Sequence record: NC_028256.1
DNA: 13,769 nucleotides
Direction: 5' to 3' (one strand)
How positions within the stretch are numbered: the stretch's first letter is position 1; each line of letters starts with the position of its first letter. The position numbers and the translations under genes are program-made. Below the pieces are notes generated by a model. That model was not told the DNA's origin and searched no databases. It was given only the letters and a program-made list of their open reading frames with translations. Positions 3,169 to 13,622 of the stretch are shown one piece after another.

Positions 3169-3220
3169 GCGTGGCCACCAAAAAATCTGGGGGGTTTAGG
3201 GCGTTAATTAAGGGCTACAG

Positions 3221-5257
3221 CTAGGAGGGCTGGAGGGAGATGCTCTCGATCACGCCATAGGCTTTAACGAAGACTCCAGAGACCTGTAACAGCGAGGCGT
3301 CGGCCAGAGCCTTCAGACCTACCTCGACATAGTAGTCGCCAGCACCTAGCTGGAGGTTGTTCAGCTCGAAGGACAGGGTTTTCACCCCCTCCATACCAGG
3401 GGGTAGATCCTTCTCGATAGTTACTACAGTATCCTCTACATGCTTTATCAAGTTGCCGCTGGGATCGTAGAGCTTCACAACGGCTATCACGTAACCCGTG
3501 TTTCCATAGCTGTCAACACCGTAGTAGTACACCATCATCAGGATCCTGAGAGTGTAGCTGCCGCTGGCTGGTGCATTGAGCCTAACCTTGCTGTAGGCAT
3601 ATGCCCATGCATCCTCGTATATATCGCTAAAAGCAGCTACCCTCAGCAGCCAGCCGTCTCCCGAGACACCATAGTCTGCATAATAGCTTGTTAGACTGAG
3701 GAAGCCAGTGCTGTCTCCTCCAGTCTCGACAAGCTCCCCGCTCCAGAGCGCCTTCGGCTCCTGCAGAGGGTCTAGGGGAGACCTCCCGAGCCTCTGAGCC
3801 AGGTCCAGGTACAACTTGAGGGCCTGCACCGCCAGGATGGTGCTCTCGCTGTTCACTACGGCAAAGGGCCACTCGCTGGGCATGGGTCTCAATGCTTCTC
3901 CCACATCATAACCTAGAGTTGCCAGGACTCCAGTTACAGAGTCGAGGCCGCTTGTAAAAGTGTCCAGGATACCCCAGGCGCTAGGTTTTGAGACGAGGCT
4001 GCCTATATCATAGGCGGCGGGCCACCATCCCCTGAATAGGGCTAGCCTCACAGGGCCCCAGGGTGTGTCGTGCTCATAATCCCACTGTAGTCTGACAAGG
4101 ATGCCAGCCAGCCTATCGGCCATATAAAGTATGTCGTTGCCAGCCACCCACCTATCACCAGTCGTGTCATAGTACTTTACCAAGGCTGCCAGCAGAGTCG
4201 CATTGAGATATACTGGATAACCCTTGTAGCTCCAGCTAAGCCCGTAAACATTGGCCTTCTTGAGCCCGTACCCATCCCATCCGCCCTCTATAATTGCCTC
4301 TGCGATTAGCTGCTCCGCTTCGCTCTGAGCACTGGCGCCATACTTGTCAAGGAGATGCATAGCTCTAAGTAGCTTATGTAGGGGGAACTCCTTCCACCCA
4401 GAGATAGCCTCGTTGAAAAGGCCGAGGGAGTCGAGAATGTAGATCCTGCTCTTGTAAGGATAGTTAACCAAGTAGTCGCCCACCTGCCAGGGGTGCCCTT
4501 CATAGCCGTTCCAGGAGAGCCAGGTGCTGTACCTGTAGTCGAAGAAGCTGTCTGGATACGTTTTACTCCTGCCAAAGAGCGGCGCATACACGTCGTAGTT
4601 AAAGTCTACAACATTGTCCCAAAGCTCCTTCATCTTACGTGGATAGTAGCTGTAGCCCTCGTCCTCCAGCAGCCAAGCCGCTATTATGGTGCTGTGCCTG
4701 AGGACGTATCTCGCACTGTGGAACTTGTAGTCGTTCCCCTCATAGATTGTTTTGGTGGTGCTCCAGCCCTGTGTAACGCCGTAGTACCAGTACGATCCTC
4801 TGGTGCCTAGCGCTAGGTCGAACTGGTATTCAGATTCGTCGACGTATACTAGTAGCTCGTCAGTATTGTAATCAACGTTAGTGAGCGATGCATAAATCAC
4901 TATGTCATAGTCGCTGTCGCTGTCGACATTGAAGTAGTATCGCCACGCTACCATATTGTTTGTGACGCCAACCAGCTCCGTCTTGTAATATTTGTCGCCA
5001 GGATCTAGGAAGCTACCTGGAACATAGAGTTCGCCGTTGTACTTAACCATGATTGTCGGGCTGGGGTAATCTGGCATTACGTAGTAGGTGCTACCGTTAA
5101 CGTCTACGGGCCTGATGGCATCGAGAACTGCCTGGACACCCAGGTCTATCGCATTCTGCACGTCAGTCAGCGTCAGCCCGCTGGCCTTCACTGGTACAGC
5201 ATAGAGTATCGCCTGCGCTAACAGGAGAGCGACCAGAGCTAGAGACGCCACCCTCAA
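3221..5257 (-). CDS. Large secreted/virion protein (678 aa) with a probable (alpha/alpha)-barrel core and beta-rich domains; candidate receptor-binding or glycan-active protein
   Basis: N-terminal signal peptide (MRVASLALVALLLAQAILYAVPVKA), Tyr/Trp/Gly rich. Helical repeats such as NATLLAALVKYYDTTGD...ADRLAGILVRLQW and NSESTILAVQALKLYL resemble six-hairpin glycosidase/prenyltransferase-type barrels. TTTTAAA at 5276-5270 upstream. Confidence 0.85.
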   Translation of the reverse strand: MRVASLALVALLLAQAILYAVPVKASGLTLTDVQNAIDLGVQAVLDAIRPVDVNGSTYYVMPDYPSPTIMVKYNGELYVPGSFLDPGDKYYKTELVGVTNNMVAWRYYFNVDSDSDYDIVIYASLTNVDYNTDELLVYVDESEYQFDLALGTRGSYWYYGVTQGWSTTKTIYEGNDYKFHSARYVLRHSTIIAAWLLEDEGYSYYPRKMKELWDNVVDFNYDVYAPLFGRSKTYPDSFFDYRYSTWLSWNGYEGHPWQVGDYLVNYPYKSRIYILDSLGLFNEAISGWKEFPLHKLLRAMHLLDKYGASAQSEAEQLIAEAIIEGGWDGYGLKKANVYGLSWSYKGYPVYLNATLLAALVKYYDTTGDRWVAGNDILYMADRLAGILVRLQWDYEHDTPWGPVRLALFRGWWPAAYDIGSLVSKPSAWGILDTFTSGLDSVTGVLATLGYDVGEALRPMPSEWPFAVVNSESTILAVQALKLYLDLAQRLGRSPLDPLQEPKALWSGELVETGGDSTGFLSLTSYYADYGVSGDGWLLRVAAFSDIYEDAWAYAYSKVRLNAPASGSYTLRILMMVYYYGVDSYGNTGYVIAVVKLYDPSGNLIKHVEDTVVTIEKDLPPGMEGVKTLSFELNNLQLGAGDYYVEVGLKALADASLLQVSGVFVKAYGVIESISLQPS

Positions 5258-5347: not shown

Positions 5348-6353
5348 TTAAATCCGTCTGGCCAGAGCTACAGCTCTCGCCAGGGCGATTGCAGCCGCCA
5401 GGGCCCCTCCAGCCGCTGCAGCCGCCTCGGGCAGACCCCAGTACTGACCCCTTGCCTTAGCCTCTGCAATGTACTGCTTGGTAGAGTTGTACAGGTAGTA
5501 AGGGTCCTTTATGGCTGGGTCGTTAGCTGGCTCTATGAAAGTGTTCTCATGGTACTCGTTCCAGCTAGTTATGGCTATCAATCTCACTCTGTCAAGGTTG
5601 CGGAGCACCCATTCCCACTGCCTCTCGTACCAGCCCTGGGATAGGTCGTAGTCTATAGAGAGGCCAGGGCTCCTGAAGTGGTCATCCCTATAACGTGGGG
5701 TGAGGACAACATAGCCGTCCCTCCTCACCCTCAGCTCCCCGCTCAACGCATTGTCGTAGTCTGGCCAGTAGTCCCAATCCTGGTAGCCTGCACTGTCAAT
5801 GTCATTACCTACTATCCTGATTGCGTAGCCAGGGAAGTCGGGCCTCGGGTCGTATGCCAAGCCTATAGGGTTGAACGCCAGCACCAGGGGCTTGCCGTCC
5901 AGCCTGAGATATGCTCCTGGGTAGCGGTCGATGAAATTTTGCTTTATATAAGCTAGGGTCTGCTCCCAGAACGCCCTGTCATACCTCGAGGGGTCGTTGC
6001 CGAGATAGGGCTCAACGAATATGGCGGCCTTGAGTCCGTAGAGCTGCGCCCTCCAGAACACCCTCCTAGCCGCCTCGTCCTCGAAGCCCCCTGGCCCCCA
6101 CCACGATATGAAGAGGCAGTCTATGCCAGCCTCCCGCATCCTCTGGAGCTGCCAGTCGATAACCCTAACGTCCCTGCTGTCGTAGAGGCCGATAACAGGC
6201 ACTGCAAGAACAGTGCTGTCCCAGTGCCTCCCATCACCGCTGTACCATGGGTAGAAGTAGACGCAGACTATAGGCTGGCTAGAGGAGTATACCGTGATGG
6301 GGGCTGTAGATAGTGCTAGCAGGAAAAAAGAGTAGTGCTGCTTCTCTTCTCAC
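5348..6353 (-). CDS. GH99/GH71-like glycoside hydrolase (endo-alpha-mannosidase family) with signal peptide and C-terminal membrane anchor; frameshifted at 6324-6329
   Basis: GH99-type motifs: VYFYPWY (in frame upstream of the track's 6202 start), GLYDSRD, AGIDCLFISWWG, FVEPY and ITSWNEYHENTFIEP (ExxE catalytic pair). The SD-led GTG at 6353 is in a different frame; removing one T from the T6 run yields a 334-aa protein starting MRREAALLFFLLALSTAPITVYS. Confidence 0.85.
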
Positions 6354-6355
6354 GG

Positions 6356-7024
6356 CTACCTCCCCAGCTTGCCTACAATACCCACCATCCTGTCGAGAAT
6401 CTTTATGACGACACCGAAAACAGCAACAACAACCAGCAGCGGCATCACGGCGGCTACAGCCTCTGTTATAGCGCTGGGGTCGTACATGGCGCTATAATCT
6501 GGCTCCGTCGACAATGTTATACTGCCAGCGGTGAAAGCCTGGGTGGTGCCGTCAGGCGTGTGGGCCCATATGTCGGCTAGGCTAGGCGCATTTATGTTGG
6601 CTAGCTCGTACAGCAGGTTTCCAGCGTCGTCGTAGATCTGAAGCTTGTCCTGGCGGTACTTTATTGTAAGCCCTGCTAGCTGGCTCCAGTCCCCCAGAAC
6701 TACGTCAGTCGTGACGCCTAGCGCAGGGGCCTGTAGCACTATGCTCCCGCTGGTCTTGAAGAATAGAATCAGCACCTCATTAGCGGCTGAGTCCCTGAAG
6801 CTTAGTGCCAGGTTGTCGGTTGCTGGGGCGTTTGTAGTGGAGTCTATGTTAACCTGCAGCCCGCTCCAGGCGACGGTTATCAGTGCTGGAGGGTCTACTG
6901 GGAAGCTGTATGTCTGGTTGACTACTGTAGCGTCTATGGTTACGCTGGCCGCTGCCAGGGCTGGCGCTGCTGGCGCCACCAGCAGTGCTATAGCTATTGC
7001 AAAAGCGACTAGTGGGAGCTTCAT
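6356..7024 (-). CDS. Putative minor virion protein (222 aa): signal peptide, beta-rich ectodomain, C-terminal TM helix and basic tail
   Basis: MKLPLVAFAIAIALLVAPAAPALAA leader, NQT sequon, C-terminal AVAAVMPLLVVVAVFGVVIKILDRMVGIVGKLGR. Confidence 0.8.
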   Translation of the reverse strand: MKLPLVAFAIAIALLVAPAAPALAAASVTIDATVVNQTYSFPVDPPALITVAWSGLQVNIDSTTNAPATDNLALSFRDSAANEVLILFFKTSGSIVLQAPALGVTTDVVLGDWSQLAGLTIKYRQDKLQIYDDAGNLLYELANINAPSLADIWAHTPDGTTQAFTAGSITLSTEPDYSAMYDPSAITEAVAAVMPLLVVVAVFGVVIKILDRMVGIVGKLGR

Positions 7025-8983: not shown

Positions 8984-10159
8984 CTAGAAGACTATGTCTA
9001 TCAGCGTCTTTATCAGCTCAACGGCTTTTGCCGCCAGGCTGGCGCTCGCCTCGAGGGCTGCCTTGGCTATGCCGAAGAGCCCCATAAGTATCCTGTAGTT
9101 CCTGTAGAAGAAGTCCACAACAGGCTCGACGCTAGTTTCCTCGACAGTCCTGAATATGCTAGACAGCAGCCACAGGCTCCATAGGACACCAGCATACGGC
9201 AGGAATACTAGCGTCCCCTGGACGGCCAGGGGGGCTACCGTCATTATCACGTTTACCAGCGTTCTTACGCCCCCCCAGCCCTTTATATACGTCTCGGTGC
9301 GGGGCTCGCTAACCTTTTCATATGCTGTACCCCACTCCGTCCAGACTATCCTGACATGCCAGGGCGTGTATGTTAGCTCGCTGACGACAATCTCATACGT
9401 CCCAGGGCCCTGGAAAGTCAGGAACGCATCCCTGGAGACCTTATCGAGAACACCGTCACCGTTAGTATCCGCTGCTATATGGGCGTAGAACTCTGTGCCA
9501 AGCTGGAGGCCGTCCAGGTAGAACTTCACCCTCACCCCACTCTCCTGAGGCTCAACCGACAGGACCTTAAGCTCTACGAGGCTGCTACAGTCTATCTGGT
9601 CGGCCATGATCTGGAACACGGGGTCTGGATAGCTCCCTGGGTCGTAGGGCTCCCAGCTGCCGTCGCCGTTGGAGTCCCATATCCTGACCATCTTCAGGTT
9701 GGGCACCGTATCCTCGCCAGTTATCTTGATCGAATAGTATTCGTCCAGGCTGGGTGTGCCATTAGGCTTGGAGACTATCATTAGGGCGTAGTACTTGTCC
9801 GCCGCCAGGCTCTGGCTCAGGCTTATTATGACAGCCTCGTCGTAGGTCGGTATATACTCGGCCTGGTGCAGCAGGTTGTAGGGTATACCGTCGAAGGTGC
9901 CAGCAGCCACTGGATCCTGGCTGTACTCCCTCAGCTCCACCTGGATGGCCCACCCGTCGTCGTCATACGCCTTGAAGACTATCTGCACGTTCCCAGCGAA
10001 GCTGCAGCCCCACCAAAGTATAGCCATAGCCTTGTGGAGCTTGTAGTAGCTGCCTGGCGGCTCTCCAGGCCCCCAGGCTGAGAGTGCCCTTGCATCGGTA
10101 GCTAGCCCTGGGAGCAGGAGTAGGAGCAGCAGCCCCGCCAGGAAGCCCCGACTCACCAT
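8984..10159 (-). CDS. Secreted/membrane-anchored protein (391 aa) with beta-rich ectodomain; candidate spike or adhesin
   Basis: Signal peptide MVSRGFLAGLLLLLLLPGLATDARA, two Dx[DN]xDG motifs (DSNGDG, DTNGDG), C-terminal hydrophobic and amphipathic helices. Confidence 0.85.
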   Translation of the reverse strand: MVSRGFLAGLLLLLLLPGLATDARALSAWGPGEPPGSYYKLHKAMAILWWGCSFAGNVQIVFKAYDDDGWAIQVELREYSQDPVAAGTFDGIPYNLLHQAEYIPTYDEAVIISLSQSLAADKYYALMIVSKPNGTPSLDEYYSIKITGEDTVPNLKMVRIWDSNGDGSWEPYDPGSYPDPVFQIMADQIDCSSLVELKVLSVEPQESGVRVKFYLDGLQLGTEFYAHIAADTNGDGVLDKVSRDAFLTFQGPGTYEIVVSELTYTPWHVRIVWTEWGTAYEKVSEPRTETYIKGWGGVRTLVNVIMTVAPLAVQGTLVFLPYAGVLWSLWLLSSIFRTVEETSVEPVVDFFYRNYRILMGLFGIAKAALEASASLAAKAVELIKTLIDIVF

Positions 10160-12272: not shown

Positions 12273-13472
12273 ATGTGGGGTGAACCCCTCTTGTATGGAG
12301 CTGGAGACTCGACTGTAACATTGGTGCCTAAACCCTTGTACGTGTACGTCCACACCGTCAAGAGCAAGGGCAGGATATACCAGTACCTCGTCGTAGAGGA
12401 GTACCTCGGCCAAGGCAGGCGTAGAACCATCCTCAGGATGCGCCTCGAAGAAGCCGTAAGGAAGCTGCTAAACAATGAAAAGAAGGACAGCGCCGAAACC
12501 GCAGGGTGGTGCGGGGGGTGGGATTTGAACCCACGCAGGCCTACGCCAACGGGTCTTAAGCCCGCCCCCTCTAAGCCATTCTCATCGATGGTAATTGAAA
12601 AGAGAGATTCGGGTGATGGAGAATCGGAGCCTAGTTTTAAGCAGGATGGAGGGTTGATTGTTTCTGAAACTCTGGCTTCCAGGTTTCTCGAGTGGCTGGA
12701 CCTGCCAGAGGACTCGAGGCAGCTGAGGGACTACAGGAACAACCTGAGGCTGCTTATAGGAAAGCCACTGGACTGTGCTACTCTCCATGAGTTCGCTAGC
12801 CAGAGCAAGAGGAAGTATGAGACCGCCTCGAGGCTGCTGAGCTTCGTGGCCAGCAAGAGGGGCTTGGGGCTTAGGCAGCTTGCAGCGGAGCTTAGGGAGT
12901 GCCTGGGCAAGAAGCCTAGGAGCGGCAGCGACACCTACGTGCCCCCAGACTCGAGTATCCTCGAGGCTGCTAGAAGGCTCGAGGGGACTAGAGTCTACCA
13001 CGTGTTCCTCCTGCTGGTGGGCTCGGGTGCCAGGCTCTCCACGGTACACTGGCTGCTGCGCCAGGGCCTCGACTCCTCGAGGCTAGTCTGCCTTGAGGAT
13101 AGGGGGTTCTGCAGGTACCACGTCGACTACGTTAAGGGCGAGAAGCTCCAGTGGGCCCTCTACAGTCCTAGGGAGTTCTGGGAGAGAGTACTCGAGGAGC
13201 CCAGGCTAACCCTGTCCTACAACAGGGTCCAGGAGCAGATAGCGGGGGCTGGCGTCAAAGCCAAGCACATTCGAAACTGGGTCTACAACAAGATGCTATC
13301 CCTAGGGATGCCCGAGGGCGTAGTCGAATTCATAGTAGGCCATAAGGCGTCGAGCATTGGAAGAAGACACTACATGAACATGATAGTCCAGGCTGACATG
13401 TGGTACACAACATACTTGCCCGTAATCCCGAAAAGCCTTAAACTAAGCTGCACCACATGCTATGAGGGTTAA
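12273..13472 (+). CDS. int: SSV1-type tyrosine integrase, partitioned by attP on integration
   Basis: Catalytic residues R (SGARL), K (VKGEK), HxR (KHIRN), H (IVGH), Y (RRHYMN). SSV-like N-terminal KGRIYQYLVVE segment; tRNA-derived attP read in frame. Start uncertain (ATG 12273, TTG 12321 or GTG 12324; the track uses 12231). Confidence 0.95.
   Translation: MWGEPLLYGAGDSTVTLVPKPLYVYVHTVKSKGRIYQYLVVEEYLGQGRRRTILRMRLEEAVRKLLNNEKKDSAETAGWCGGWDLNPRRPTPTGLKPAPSKPFSSMVIEKRDSGDGESEPSFKQDGGLIVSETLASRFLEWLDLPEDSRQLRDYRNNLRLLIGKPLDCATLHEFASQSKRKYETASRLLSFVASKRGLGLRQLAAELRECLGKKPRSGSDTYVPPDSSILEAARRLEGTRVYHVFLLLVGSGARLSTVHWLLRQGLDSSRLVCLEDRGFCRYHVDYVKGEKLQWALYSPREFWERVLEEPRLTLSYNRVQEQIAGAGVKAKHIRNWVYNKMLSLGMPEGVVEFIVGHKASSIGRRHYMNMIVQADMWYTTYLPVIPKSLKLSCTTCYEG
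12507..12570 (-). other. attP: 3' portion of tRNA-Leu(UAA) including anticodon arm, variable arm, T arm, acceptor 3' strand and CCA (not a complete tRNA)
   Basis: Minus strand reads AGGGG GCGGG CTTAAGA CCCGT TGGCGTAGGCCTGC GTGGG TTCAAAT CCCAC CCCCCGC A CCA. Anticodon TAA at 12558-12556; 5' acceptor strand and most of the D arm are absent. Confidence 0.93.
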
Positions 13473-13616: not shown

Positions 13617-13622
13617 TTTTTT
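13617..13622 (+). terminator. T6 tract, possible archaeal intrinsic terminator for the rightward operon
   Basis: TCTTTTTTG about 145 nt downstream of the integrase stop. Confidence 0.4.

Follow-up and report, generated by a model that had tools for sequence, protein, structure and literature searches.

The only proven archaeal frameshift is the -1 event in fucA1, which encodes an alpha-L-fucosidase of glycoside hydrolase (GH) family GH29 in Saccharolobus solfataricus P2. It is a close counterpart of the locus described here, namely the glycosidase gene of APOV1, a provirus of Aeropyrum pernix K1, in a window of 13,769 bp (the whole stretch of DNA analysed) that is identical to HE580237/NC_028256. 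In both cases a glycoside hydrolase of a crenarchaeal hyperthermophile is split by a one-base offset at a homopolymer, and in the case of fucA1 full-length homologues differ by one nucleotide at the run. However, in fucA1 the shift occurs in mid-gene, at a heptamer (A-AAA-AAT) with rare codons and a stem-loop on its flanks, and frameshifting of approximately 5% was demonstrated experimentally. In APOV1, by contrast, the offset is +1 and falls within the signal peptide, with no signals flanking it, and it is known here from sequence alone.

The so-called ‘savior’ or knock-down indels, as found in the G-run of the herpesvirus thymidine kinase gene (Atkins et al. 2016), also consist of a one-base indel in a short viral homopolymer, with loss of most expression and with trace slippage that may still yield product. 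For thymidine kinase there are measurements of both phenotype and residual activity, whereas APOV1 has an archaeal host and its case is read from the DNA only. At the UUU_C +1 sites of influenza PA-X and of the amalgaviruses, the P-site UUU can likewise re-pair with UUC with no strong stimulator, and the efficiency is very low. There, however, a rare CGN codon is found in the A site and the sites are phylogenetically conserved, whereas in APOV1 the A site holds CCU, a common codon, and relatives do not have the shift. Finally, bacterial contingency loci also feature a 5'-proximal homopolymer in genes for surface-glycan enzymes, from which the APOV1 run differs in being of only 6 nt and invariant in all copies. 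Contingency tracts are typically of at least 8 nt and vary between isolates. The APOV1 locus is probably best explained by a recent homopolymer indel of the K1 lineage, which would silence, or nearly silence, a conserved viral glycosidase.

Anatomy of the frame break and its presence in the DNA

In the current record the glycosidase gene appears as orf10-284, a 284-aa ‘hypothetical protein’, with a GTG at 6200-6202 as the annotated start (all coordinates of the glycosidase locus are on the minus strand). The ICTV profile, which gives 21 open reading frames (ORFs) for APOV1, names ‘a glycoside hydrolase’ among them and leaves the frameshift unmentioned. The real start codon of the gene is the GTG at 6351-6353, on the basis of the strength of its Shine-Dalgarno (SD) sequence and of the start position in relatives. 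This SD sequence (GGAGGT, 6358-6363) is found 4 nt upstream of the GTG, overlaps the stop codon of the preceding gene (orf11-222, TAG 6358-6356), and is among the strongest of the 21 starts in the genome, with none present at GTG 6202. The frame set by GTG 6353 (frame 0) reads V/M-RREAALLFFPASTIYSPHHGILL and stops at TAG 6281-6279, thus forming a mini-ORF of 24 codons plus stop (6279-6353), the first 10 codons of which (M-RRE-AALLFF) correspond, in the ancestral signal peptide, to the n-region and to the beginning of the h-region. The frame of the catalytic domain (GH frame) is closed upstream by a TGA (6350-6352) that overlaps the GTG; it comprises 333 codons plus TAA (5350-5348) between 6349 and 5348, and encodes the rest of the signal peptide, the (beta/alpha)8 domain and the C-terminal anchor. 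The two frames are separated by a +1 offset at a T6 run at 6324-6329 (CTC TTT TTT CCT in frame 0), and the two pieces of the gene, that in frame 0 and that in the GH frame, were analysed separately. The elements listed in the first-pass annotation, among them the lack of a start codon before 6202 in the GH frame, were all confirmed to the base.

The earliest ATG, GTG or TTG codon of the GH frame, i.e. GTG 6202, is found downstream of the first barrel strand. This strand (beta1; IVCVYF, residues 27-32 of the GH-frame piece, 6254-6271) was located by alignment and in the AlphaFold2 (AF2) model, both of which support the early proposal that the 284-aa product, which also lacks the signal peptide, is without beta1. 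In an alignment with 20 homologues, residues 26-49 of the GH-frame piece (PIVCVYFYPWYSGDGRHW...) match the N-terminal block that is most strongly conserved, which in the family has the pattern (P)xVCVYFYPWY...RHW. The stretch upstream of GTG 6202 is clearly real coding sequence, as judged from this alignment and from the beta1 strand that it is predicted to form.

Other ways of entering the GH frame were considered and set aside. Non-canonical initiation at a CTG, ATA, ATC or ACG codon was rejected, with none of them at SD distance in this frame and with a resulting leader that would have no charged n-region. Termination at TAG 6279 followed by reinitiation was also rejected, the next GH-frame start being 77 nt away and downstream of beta1.

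The T6 run itself is ordinary. The window contains 17 homopolymer runs of at least 6 nt, none of which reaches 8 nt, and 4 of them are A/T runs of at least 6, compared with 2.6 +/- 1.6 in shuffled sequences. The significance of the locus is therefore in the splitting of a conserved ORF rather than in the run as such. Of the other three A/T runs of 6, two are intergenic T6 tracts on the sense strand, one at 3180-3185 (36 nt past the stop of orf9 and 12 nt ahead of orf8) and one at 13617-13622 (after the integrase gene); they could be archaeal oligo-T terminators, the former being alternatively part of a promoter. By analogy with these intergenic tracts, the T6 in the glycosidase leader might cause some premature termination.

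The presence of the offset in the DNA was established by comparing assembly consensus sequences, namely the K1 chromosome and Logan read-based assemblies. T6 was found in all 10 copies fetched, which include the K1 chromosome (BA000002.3, here L069) and the read-based assemblies of several runs (SRR26374280, -83, -95, -96 and SRR4136260). The copies in SRR26374280, -83, -95 and SRR4136260 differ from the reference at window position 9148, where G replaces A in the minus-strand sense (Thr338 to Ala in orf16-391). This shared difference demonstrates that the four assemblies are independent of the reference rather than copies of it; the difference itself reflects either an error in the reference or a difference between stocks. 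Run-length polymorphism at the T6 was found neither in the 10 consensus copies nor by implication in 16 contigs, all of which carry an identical 284-aa gene call. No longer allele is present in a collection of 5.8 billion proteins, in which the corresponding cluster (P0001) has a single member, and a DNA pattern scan of Joint Genome Institute (JGI) metagenome contigs, allowing any run length at the site, gave 0 matches. Sequencing or assembly error, one of the options initially entertained, is thus excluded at the level of the consensus.

The GH99-like enzyme and its intact relatives

The GH-frame product is a GH99-like glycosidase with predicted signal peptide and membrane anchor, according to profile and model comparisons that bear out its first identification. 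The Pfam GH99 profile (PF16317) yielded 61 bits, the cut-off being 33 (E = 1.4e-16), and a profile built from 21 homologues retrieved the GH99 chains 4acy and 6zdc (E approx. 5e-16) as well as 4ad1, which are endo-alpha-mannosidases. The AF2 model of the GH-frame protein (predicted local distance difference test, pLDDT, 87.6) is a (beta/alpha)8 barrel, for which the top 36 Foldseek matches in the PDB are all GH99 proteins (E 8.5e-15 to 3e-12, template-modelling score approx. 0.6). The motif WNEYHE (5546-5563), with Glu residues E265 and E268, aligns with the catalytic NEWHE of the GH99 enzymes (SFNEWHE in 4acy). The two Glu residues do not vary across 21 sequences, and E333Q and E336Q variants of BxGH99 are listed among the PDB entries. 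The second catalytic Glu is followed in APOV1 by Asn at residue 269 (WNEYHE-N, 5543-5545), where all 39 other members compared have Arg.

With the endo-alpha-1,2-mannosidases/mannanases of GH99 (BtGH99 and BxGH99 from Bacteroides, and human MANEA) the protein shares the fold, the NE(W/Y)HE catalytic motif and a Pfam score above threshold. However, the identity to them is only 17-21%, and the APOV1 protein falls in a subfamily of archaeal proteins that have a signal peptide and, at the C-terminus, an anchor. The latter is predicted from a hydrophobic, Ala/Leu-rich segment followed by RRI (5351-5434), and would be a membrane or envelope anchor; a hydrophobic and basic C-terminal end is common to nearly all aligned homologues and forms one long terminal helix in the AF2 model. 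Given this combination of a hydrophobic segment and basic residues, the enzyme is predicted to be extracytoplasmic and anchored to the membrane or to the envelope.

The relatives of the gene were initially taken for cellular genes, a view that was abandoned when a search with orf9-678, the gene next to the glycosidase gene, revealed homologues on the same contigs as the glycosidase homologues and in synteny with them. Among 13 homologues of orf9-678 (50-65% identity), several are on contigs that also bear a glycosidase homologue. Retrieval of these contigs led to four newly found APOV1-like elements: L012 (WWDU01000023.1, from a metagenome-assembled genome, MAG, of Ca. Calypsonella navitae), L075, L076-78 and L079-80. 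They have up to 13 genes in common with APOV1, in the same order, including the series orf13-orf12-orf11-glycosidase-orf9; the genes held in common include those for the integrase, DUF5658/orf20, orf19 to orf11, the glycosidase and orf9. They look like uncharacterised relatives of APOV1 or proviruses in MAGs of the Desulfurococcales type.

In all four syntenic elements the glycosidase gene is a single intact ORF of 342-345 aa, which starts just past the stop codon of the orf11-like gene (at a distance of 2-11 nt in the three elements with called genes), in a position equivalent to that of GTG 6353. The suggestion that the two APOV1 frames are remnants of one gene with a signal peptide was thus borne out, as was the choice of GTG 6353 as the true start, which its strong SD sequence also supports. 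The length of the leaders leads to the same result: from the start codon to P(L/I)VC there are 26 residues in L075 and L076, and 10 frame-0 plus 16 GH-frame codons in APOV1. Furthermore, both pieces are spanned by the L012 leader (...LFLFLLALTAAS...), which corresponds to ...LLFF of frame 0 and to LLALSTAP of the GH frame. A T6 in the L075 leader and a T5 in that of L076 are both in frame, which indicates that such runs are a by-product of Phe, Leu and Ile codons, with no special signal. At the position of the APOV1 break one frame is found in the four syntenic relatives and in approximately 50 other homologues. With the gene intact in the syntenic relatives, the break is specific to the K1 lineage and is not a conserved recoding site; the two-frame arrangement is present only in the K1 provirus, so that what would chiefly identify programmed recoding, conservation of the arrangement in orthologues, is lacking.

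The APOV1 gene was under constraint until recently and, apart from the offset, shows no decay. No further stop codon is found in the 333 codons of the GH frame, and the substitution of Arg by Asn at residue 269 is the only private one at highly conserved sites, one being also the median for the family. The terminal branch leading to APOV1 measures 0.58 (median 0.44), and the protein groups with P0012, apart from the Aeropyrum paralogues P0027 and P0031. From this absence of decay it follows that either the lesion is recent or the gene is still in use. The two paralogues just mentioned, P0027 of A. pernix and P0031 of A. camini, are intact, chromosomal and GH99-like, approximately 53% identical, and form a separate clade; the lysogen thus has a related enzyme whatever the provirus copy does.

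Broken copies, differing in kind and position, were also found in approximately 10 of 60 genome loci of the family. The closest relatives of the glycosidase are among them: in L005 (JGI 3300021973, 75% identity) a TAG replaces the first Trp of QWEW, while L009 (Aeropyrum sp. MAG, WAKF01000049.1) has two in-frame stops, one of which is at a conserved Trp. In L009, as well as in L006, the glycosidase gene adjoins an integrase fragment that is 80% identical to the APOV1 integrase. The signal-peptide region is disrupted, each time elsewhere, in L014 (approx. 1640-1700), L020 (approx. 5650-5740), L024 (approx. 2840-2860) and L027 (approx. 3670-3740): in L014 and L020 the start codon and leader are seemingly offset by +1, in L024 there is a TAG at codon 3, and in L027 the leader starts in another frame (-1). 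Internal frame changes are present in L020, L027, L046, L060, L061 and L064. Some of the lesions in relatives may be errors of the MAGs. Their many positions and kinds fit sporadic inactivation rather than a shared mechanism. The idea that an enrichment of N-terminal lesions reveals a general switch was considered and found unconvincing, with 4 N-terminal lesions against approximately 8 internal ones, two in multiply broken copies, and with many MAGs of low coverage.

Origin and consequences of the offset

The offset most likely represents a knock-out mutation confined to this strain rather than a recoding switch that has evolved. By this mechanism, a one-base indel in a short T run would have separated the start codon and signal peptide from the catalytic frame. 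Ribosomes would then start at the SD-led GTG 6353, read 24 codons and stop at TAG 6281-6279, and the enzyme would be absent or formed in trace amounts through ordinary, unprogrammed slippage on U6. That the enzyme should not be made, or only in traces, also follows from the lack of an initiation codon in the catalytic frame ahead of beta1. Recent inactivation, which had been ranked among the lesser options at the outset, emerges as the best fit, the lesion being real and absent from the orthologues. The mutation would thus have led, recently, from the single ancestral frame to the present offset.

Several observations weigh against such a knock-out. The gene is pristine besides the offset and has kept a very strong SD sequence and its start codon, as continued use via slippage would also predict, and further signs of decay, which a pseudogene may be expected to show, are lacking. 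UUU_C is a known +1-prone P-site context, present here with two tandem UUU codons that are rare (14% of Phe codons). The one proven archaeal frameshift, that of fucA1, also concerns a crenarchaeal glycosidase split at a homopolymer. Finally, K1 stocks have carried the T6 allele without change between the 1999 reference and the runs of 2023, and the provirus can still be induced.

The main rival explanation is +1 ribosomal frameshifting, either compensatory or newly evolved, which would provide a low, functional level of full-length secreted enzyme, and which we regard as unlikely. In such a scheme, peptidyl-tRNA-Phe(GAA) on the second UUU would re-pair with UUC, CUG would be read next, and the indel would be a ‘knock-down’ tolerated or preferred by the virus or by the lysogen. 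As initially noted, the context does allow perfect +1 re-pairing of tRNA-Phe in the P site (UUU_UUU_C, UUU to UUC). With codon frequencies taken from usage in APOV1 genes, UUU is the less used of the two Phe codons (3.9 per 1000), whereas CUG, the codon of the +1 frame, is the commonest of all (44 per 1000). The otherwise intact gene is in keeping with this proposal, for which precedents are found in low-level savior indels with compensatory frameshifting and in signal-less, low-efficiency +1 sites (Atkins et al. 2016), as well as in fucA1 among the Crenarchaeota. However, the offset is found in none of the four syntenic relatives, and the 0-frame A-site codon is not a slow one, CCU (CCT) being common (24% of Pro codons, 10.5 per 1000). 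Stimulatory elements are also lacking near the run: no stable structure was detected, the 141-nt fold of 6370-6230 being no better than that of shuffled sequences (z = 0.02), and no SD-like stimulator was found near the T6, the only SD sequence being 29 nt upstream of the run and too distant to stimulate. The site is indistinguishable from a fresh mutation.

It is somewhat less likely still that T6 is kept because low-efficiency +1 slippage, ribosomal and possibly combined with slippage of RNA polymerase at 90-95 C, supplies a tiny dose of envelope glycosidase. If true, +1 recoding would be described for the first time in a crenarchaeal virus, and hyperthermophilic archaea would have, after fucA1, a second and independent frameshift-expressed glycosidase; with residual expression, archaeal recoding would gain a rare +1 case beside the one proven -1 case.

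Very unlikely is transcriptional slippage, by which the archaeal RNA polymerase would sometimes make U5 on the A6 template at 90-95 C, thereby restoring the frame in some of the mRNAs. The rU:dA homopolymer is the weakest hybrid and the high growth temperature might be expected to favour the process. Productive slippage of RNA polymerase takes place on tracts of approximately 8-9 nt or more, and the RNA:DNA hybrid is longer than 6 bases. The APOV1 run, of 6 nt, is therefore shorter than both the hybrid and the tracts known to slip productively, and there is no significant structure that could assist it as in hairpin-dependent motifs. Moreover, the arrangement is not conserved in relatives, and an oligo-T of this kind is likelier to act as an archaeal termination signal.

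Phase variation at the DNA level, in which slipped-strand mispairing would alter the T run and switch the envelope glycosidase on and off in the population, has an equally slim chance. It is suggested by the position of a homopolymer near the 5' end of a gene for a surface-glycan enzyme, as in bacterial contingency loci, and by the presence of T6 also in the L075 leader; the latter run, however, is in frame and at a different codon position. No variation of tract length is seen between copies (T6 in 10 of 10, the same 284-aa call in 16 of 16 contigs), no ORF of other length and no full-length allele occurs among the 5.8 billion proteins, where the P0001 cluster counts one member, and the tract is short, T6 runs being ordinary in the APOV1 genome. 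Programmed recoding and a phase-variable switch, the two proposals with which the locus had first been presented, are therefore not supported: relatives have a single frame, CCU is not rare, the fold is unremarkable, and the run is of 6 nt with no length variant.

The view that the 284-aa product of GTG 6202 is a real functional protein agrees with the database annotation, as reproduced by gene callers, but it is most improbable for a start codon without SD sequence, approximately 50 codons downstream of the start in all relatives, and a product without the signal peptide and the beta1 strand conserved in all homologues. The chance that the offset is an artefact of the 1999 genome is practically negligible: the virus record HE580237 is a third-party annotation (TPA), so that its sequence was taken from the K1 chromosome and could have inherited an error, to which homopolymers are prone, but the same T6 is seen in short-read assemblies that are independent, come from at least two accession series and differ from the reference at another site.

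Genome context, orf9-678 and implications

The glycosidase gene is the distal, SD-led cistron after orf11-222 (6356-7024, minus strand), with which synteny is conserved, and the GGAGGT sequence overlaps the orf11-222 stop codon in the manner usual for distal cistrons of crenarchaeal operons. It is followed by orf9-678 (3221-5257, minus strand), the conserved downstream partner, which encodes a predicted secreted multidomain protein with jelly-roll domains similar to carbohydrate-binding modules (CBMs). An A/T-rich box precedes orf9-678 and may be its own promoter. Scans for sigma-70 promoters and for hairpin terminators gave no match, both being ill-suited to archaea. PHROGs contained no match for the glycosidase, orf9 or orf11 products, and in IMG/VR the sole entry found was APOV1 itself.

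Elsewhere in the window, a 65-bp segment (12506-12570) is found on both flanks of the provirus in the K1 chromosome, where the region 3633-17466 of L069 measures 13,834 bp, i.e. 13,769 + 65. The segment, the att core, is inside the integrase gene, which is of SSV type, and several Logan contigs terminate at it. The coding sequence at 1362-2021 is called ‘orf5-119’ in a database note but has 219 codons, probably due to a typing error in the record.

In the AF2 model of the orf9-678 product (pLDDT 82), a helical core is flanked by an N-terminal and a C-terminal beta-sandwich. One of the sandwiches resembles CBM61, CBM4 and the distal domains of tailspikes and tail fibres of Klebsiella phages, which suggests that orf9-678 is a secreted carbohydrate-binding protein, possibly an adhesin. 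In turn, the conserved pairing of the GH99-like enzyme with orf9-678 suggests, from gene order and models, recognition and trimming of host surface glycans by an enveloped virus. The enzyme would probably act by trimming host or virion surface glycans together with orf9-678. A survey of the literature on A. pernix glycans yielded nothing specific.

APOV1 is the only cultured ovoid archaeal virus and the type and only sequenced member of Betaguttavirus, of which it has been described as the sole member. The mechanism at its glycosidase locus is an ordinary homopolymer frameshift; what is new is the corrected annotation of the type betaguttavirus, together with its relatives. The gene proper begins at 6353; its product is a GH99-like enzyme predicted to bear a signal peptide and to be anchored in the membrane, conserved beside a predicted carbohydrate-binding protein of 678 aa in at least four related elements from MAGs.

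The reference strain K1 carries a broken copy of this gene, a fact of relevance to those who use K1 and APOV1 as a model. The 2011 description of the virus by Mochizuki et al. is said to report no propagation of APOV1 on new hosts. It may be that K1 virions are missing a conserved surface enzyme, which could bear on the absence of such reports.

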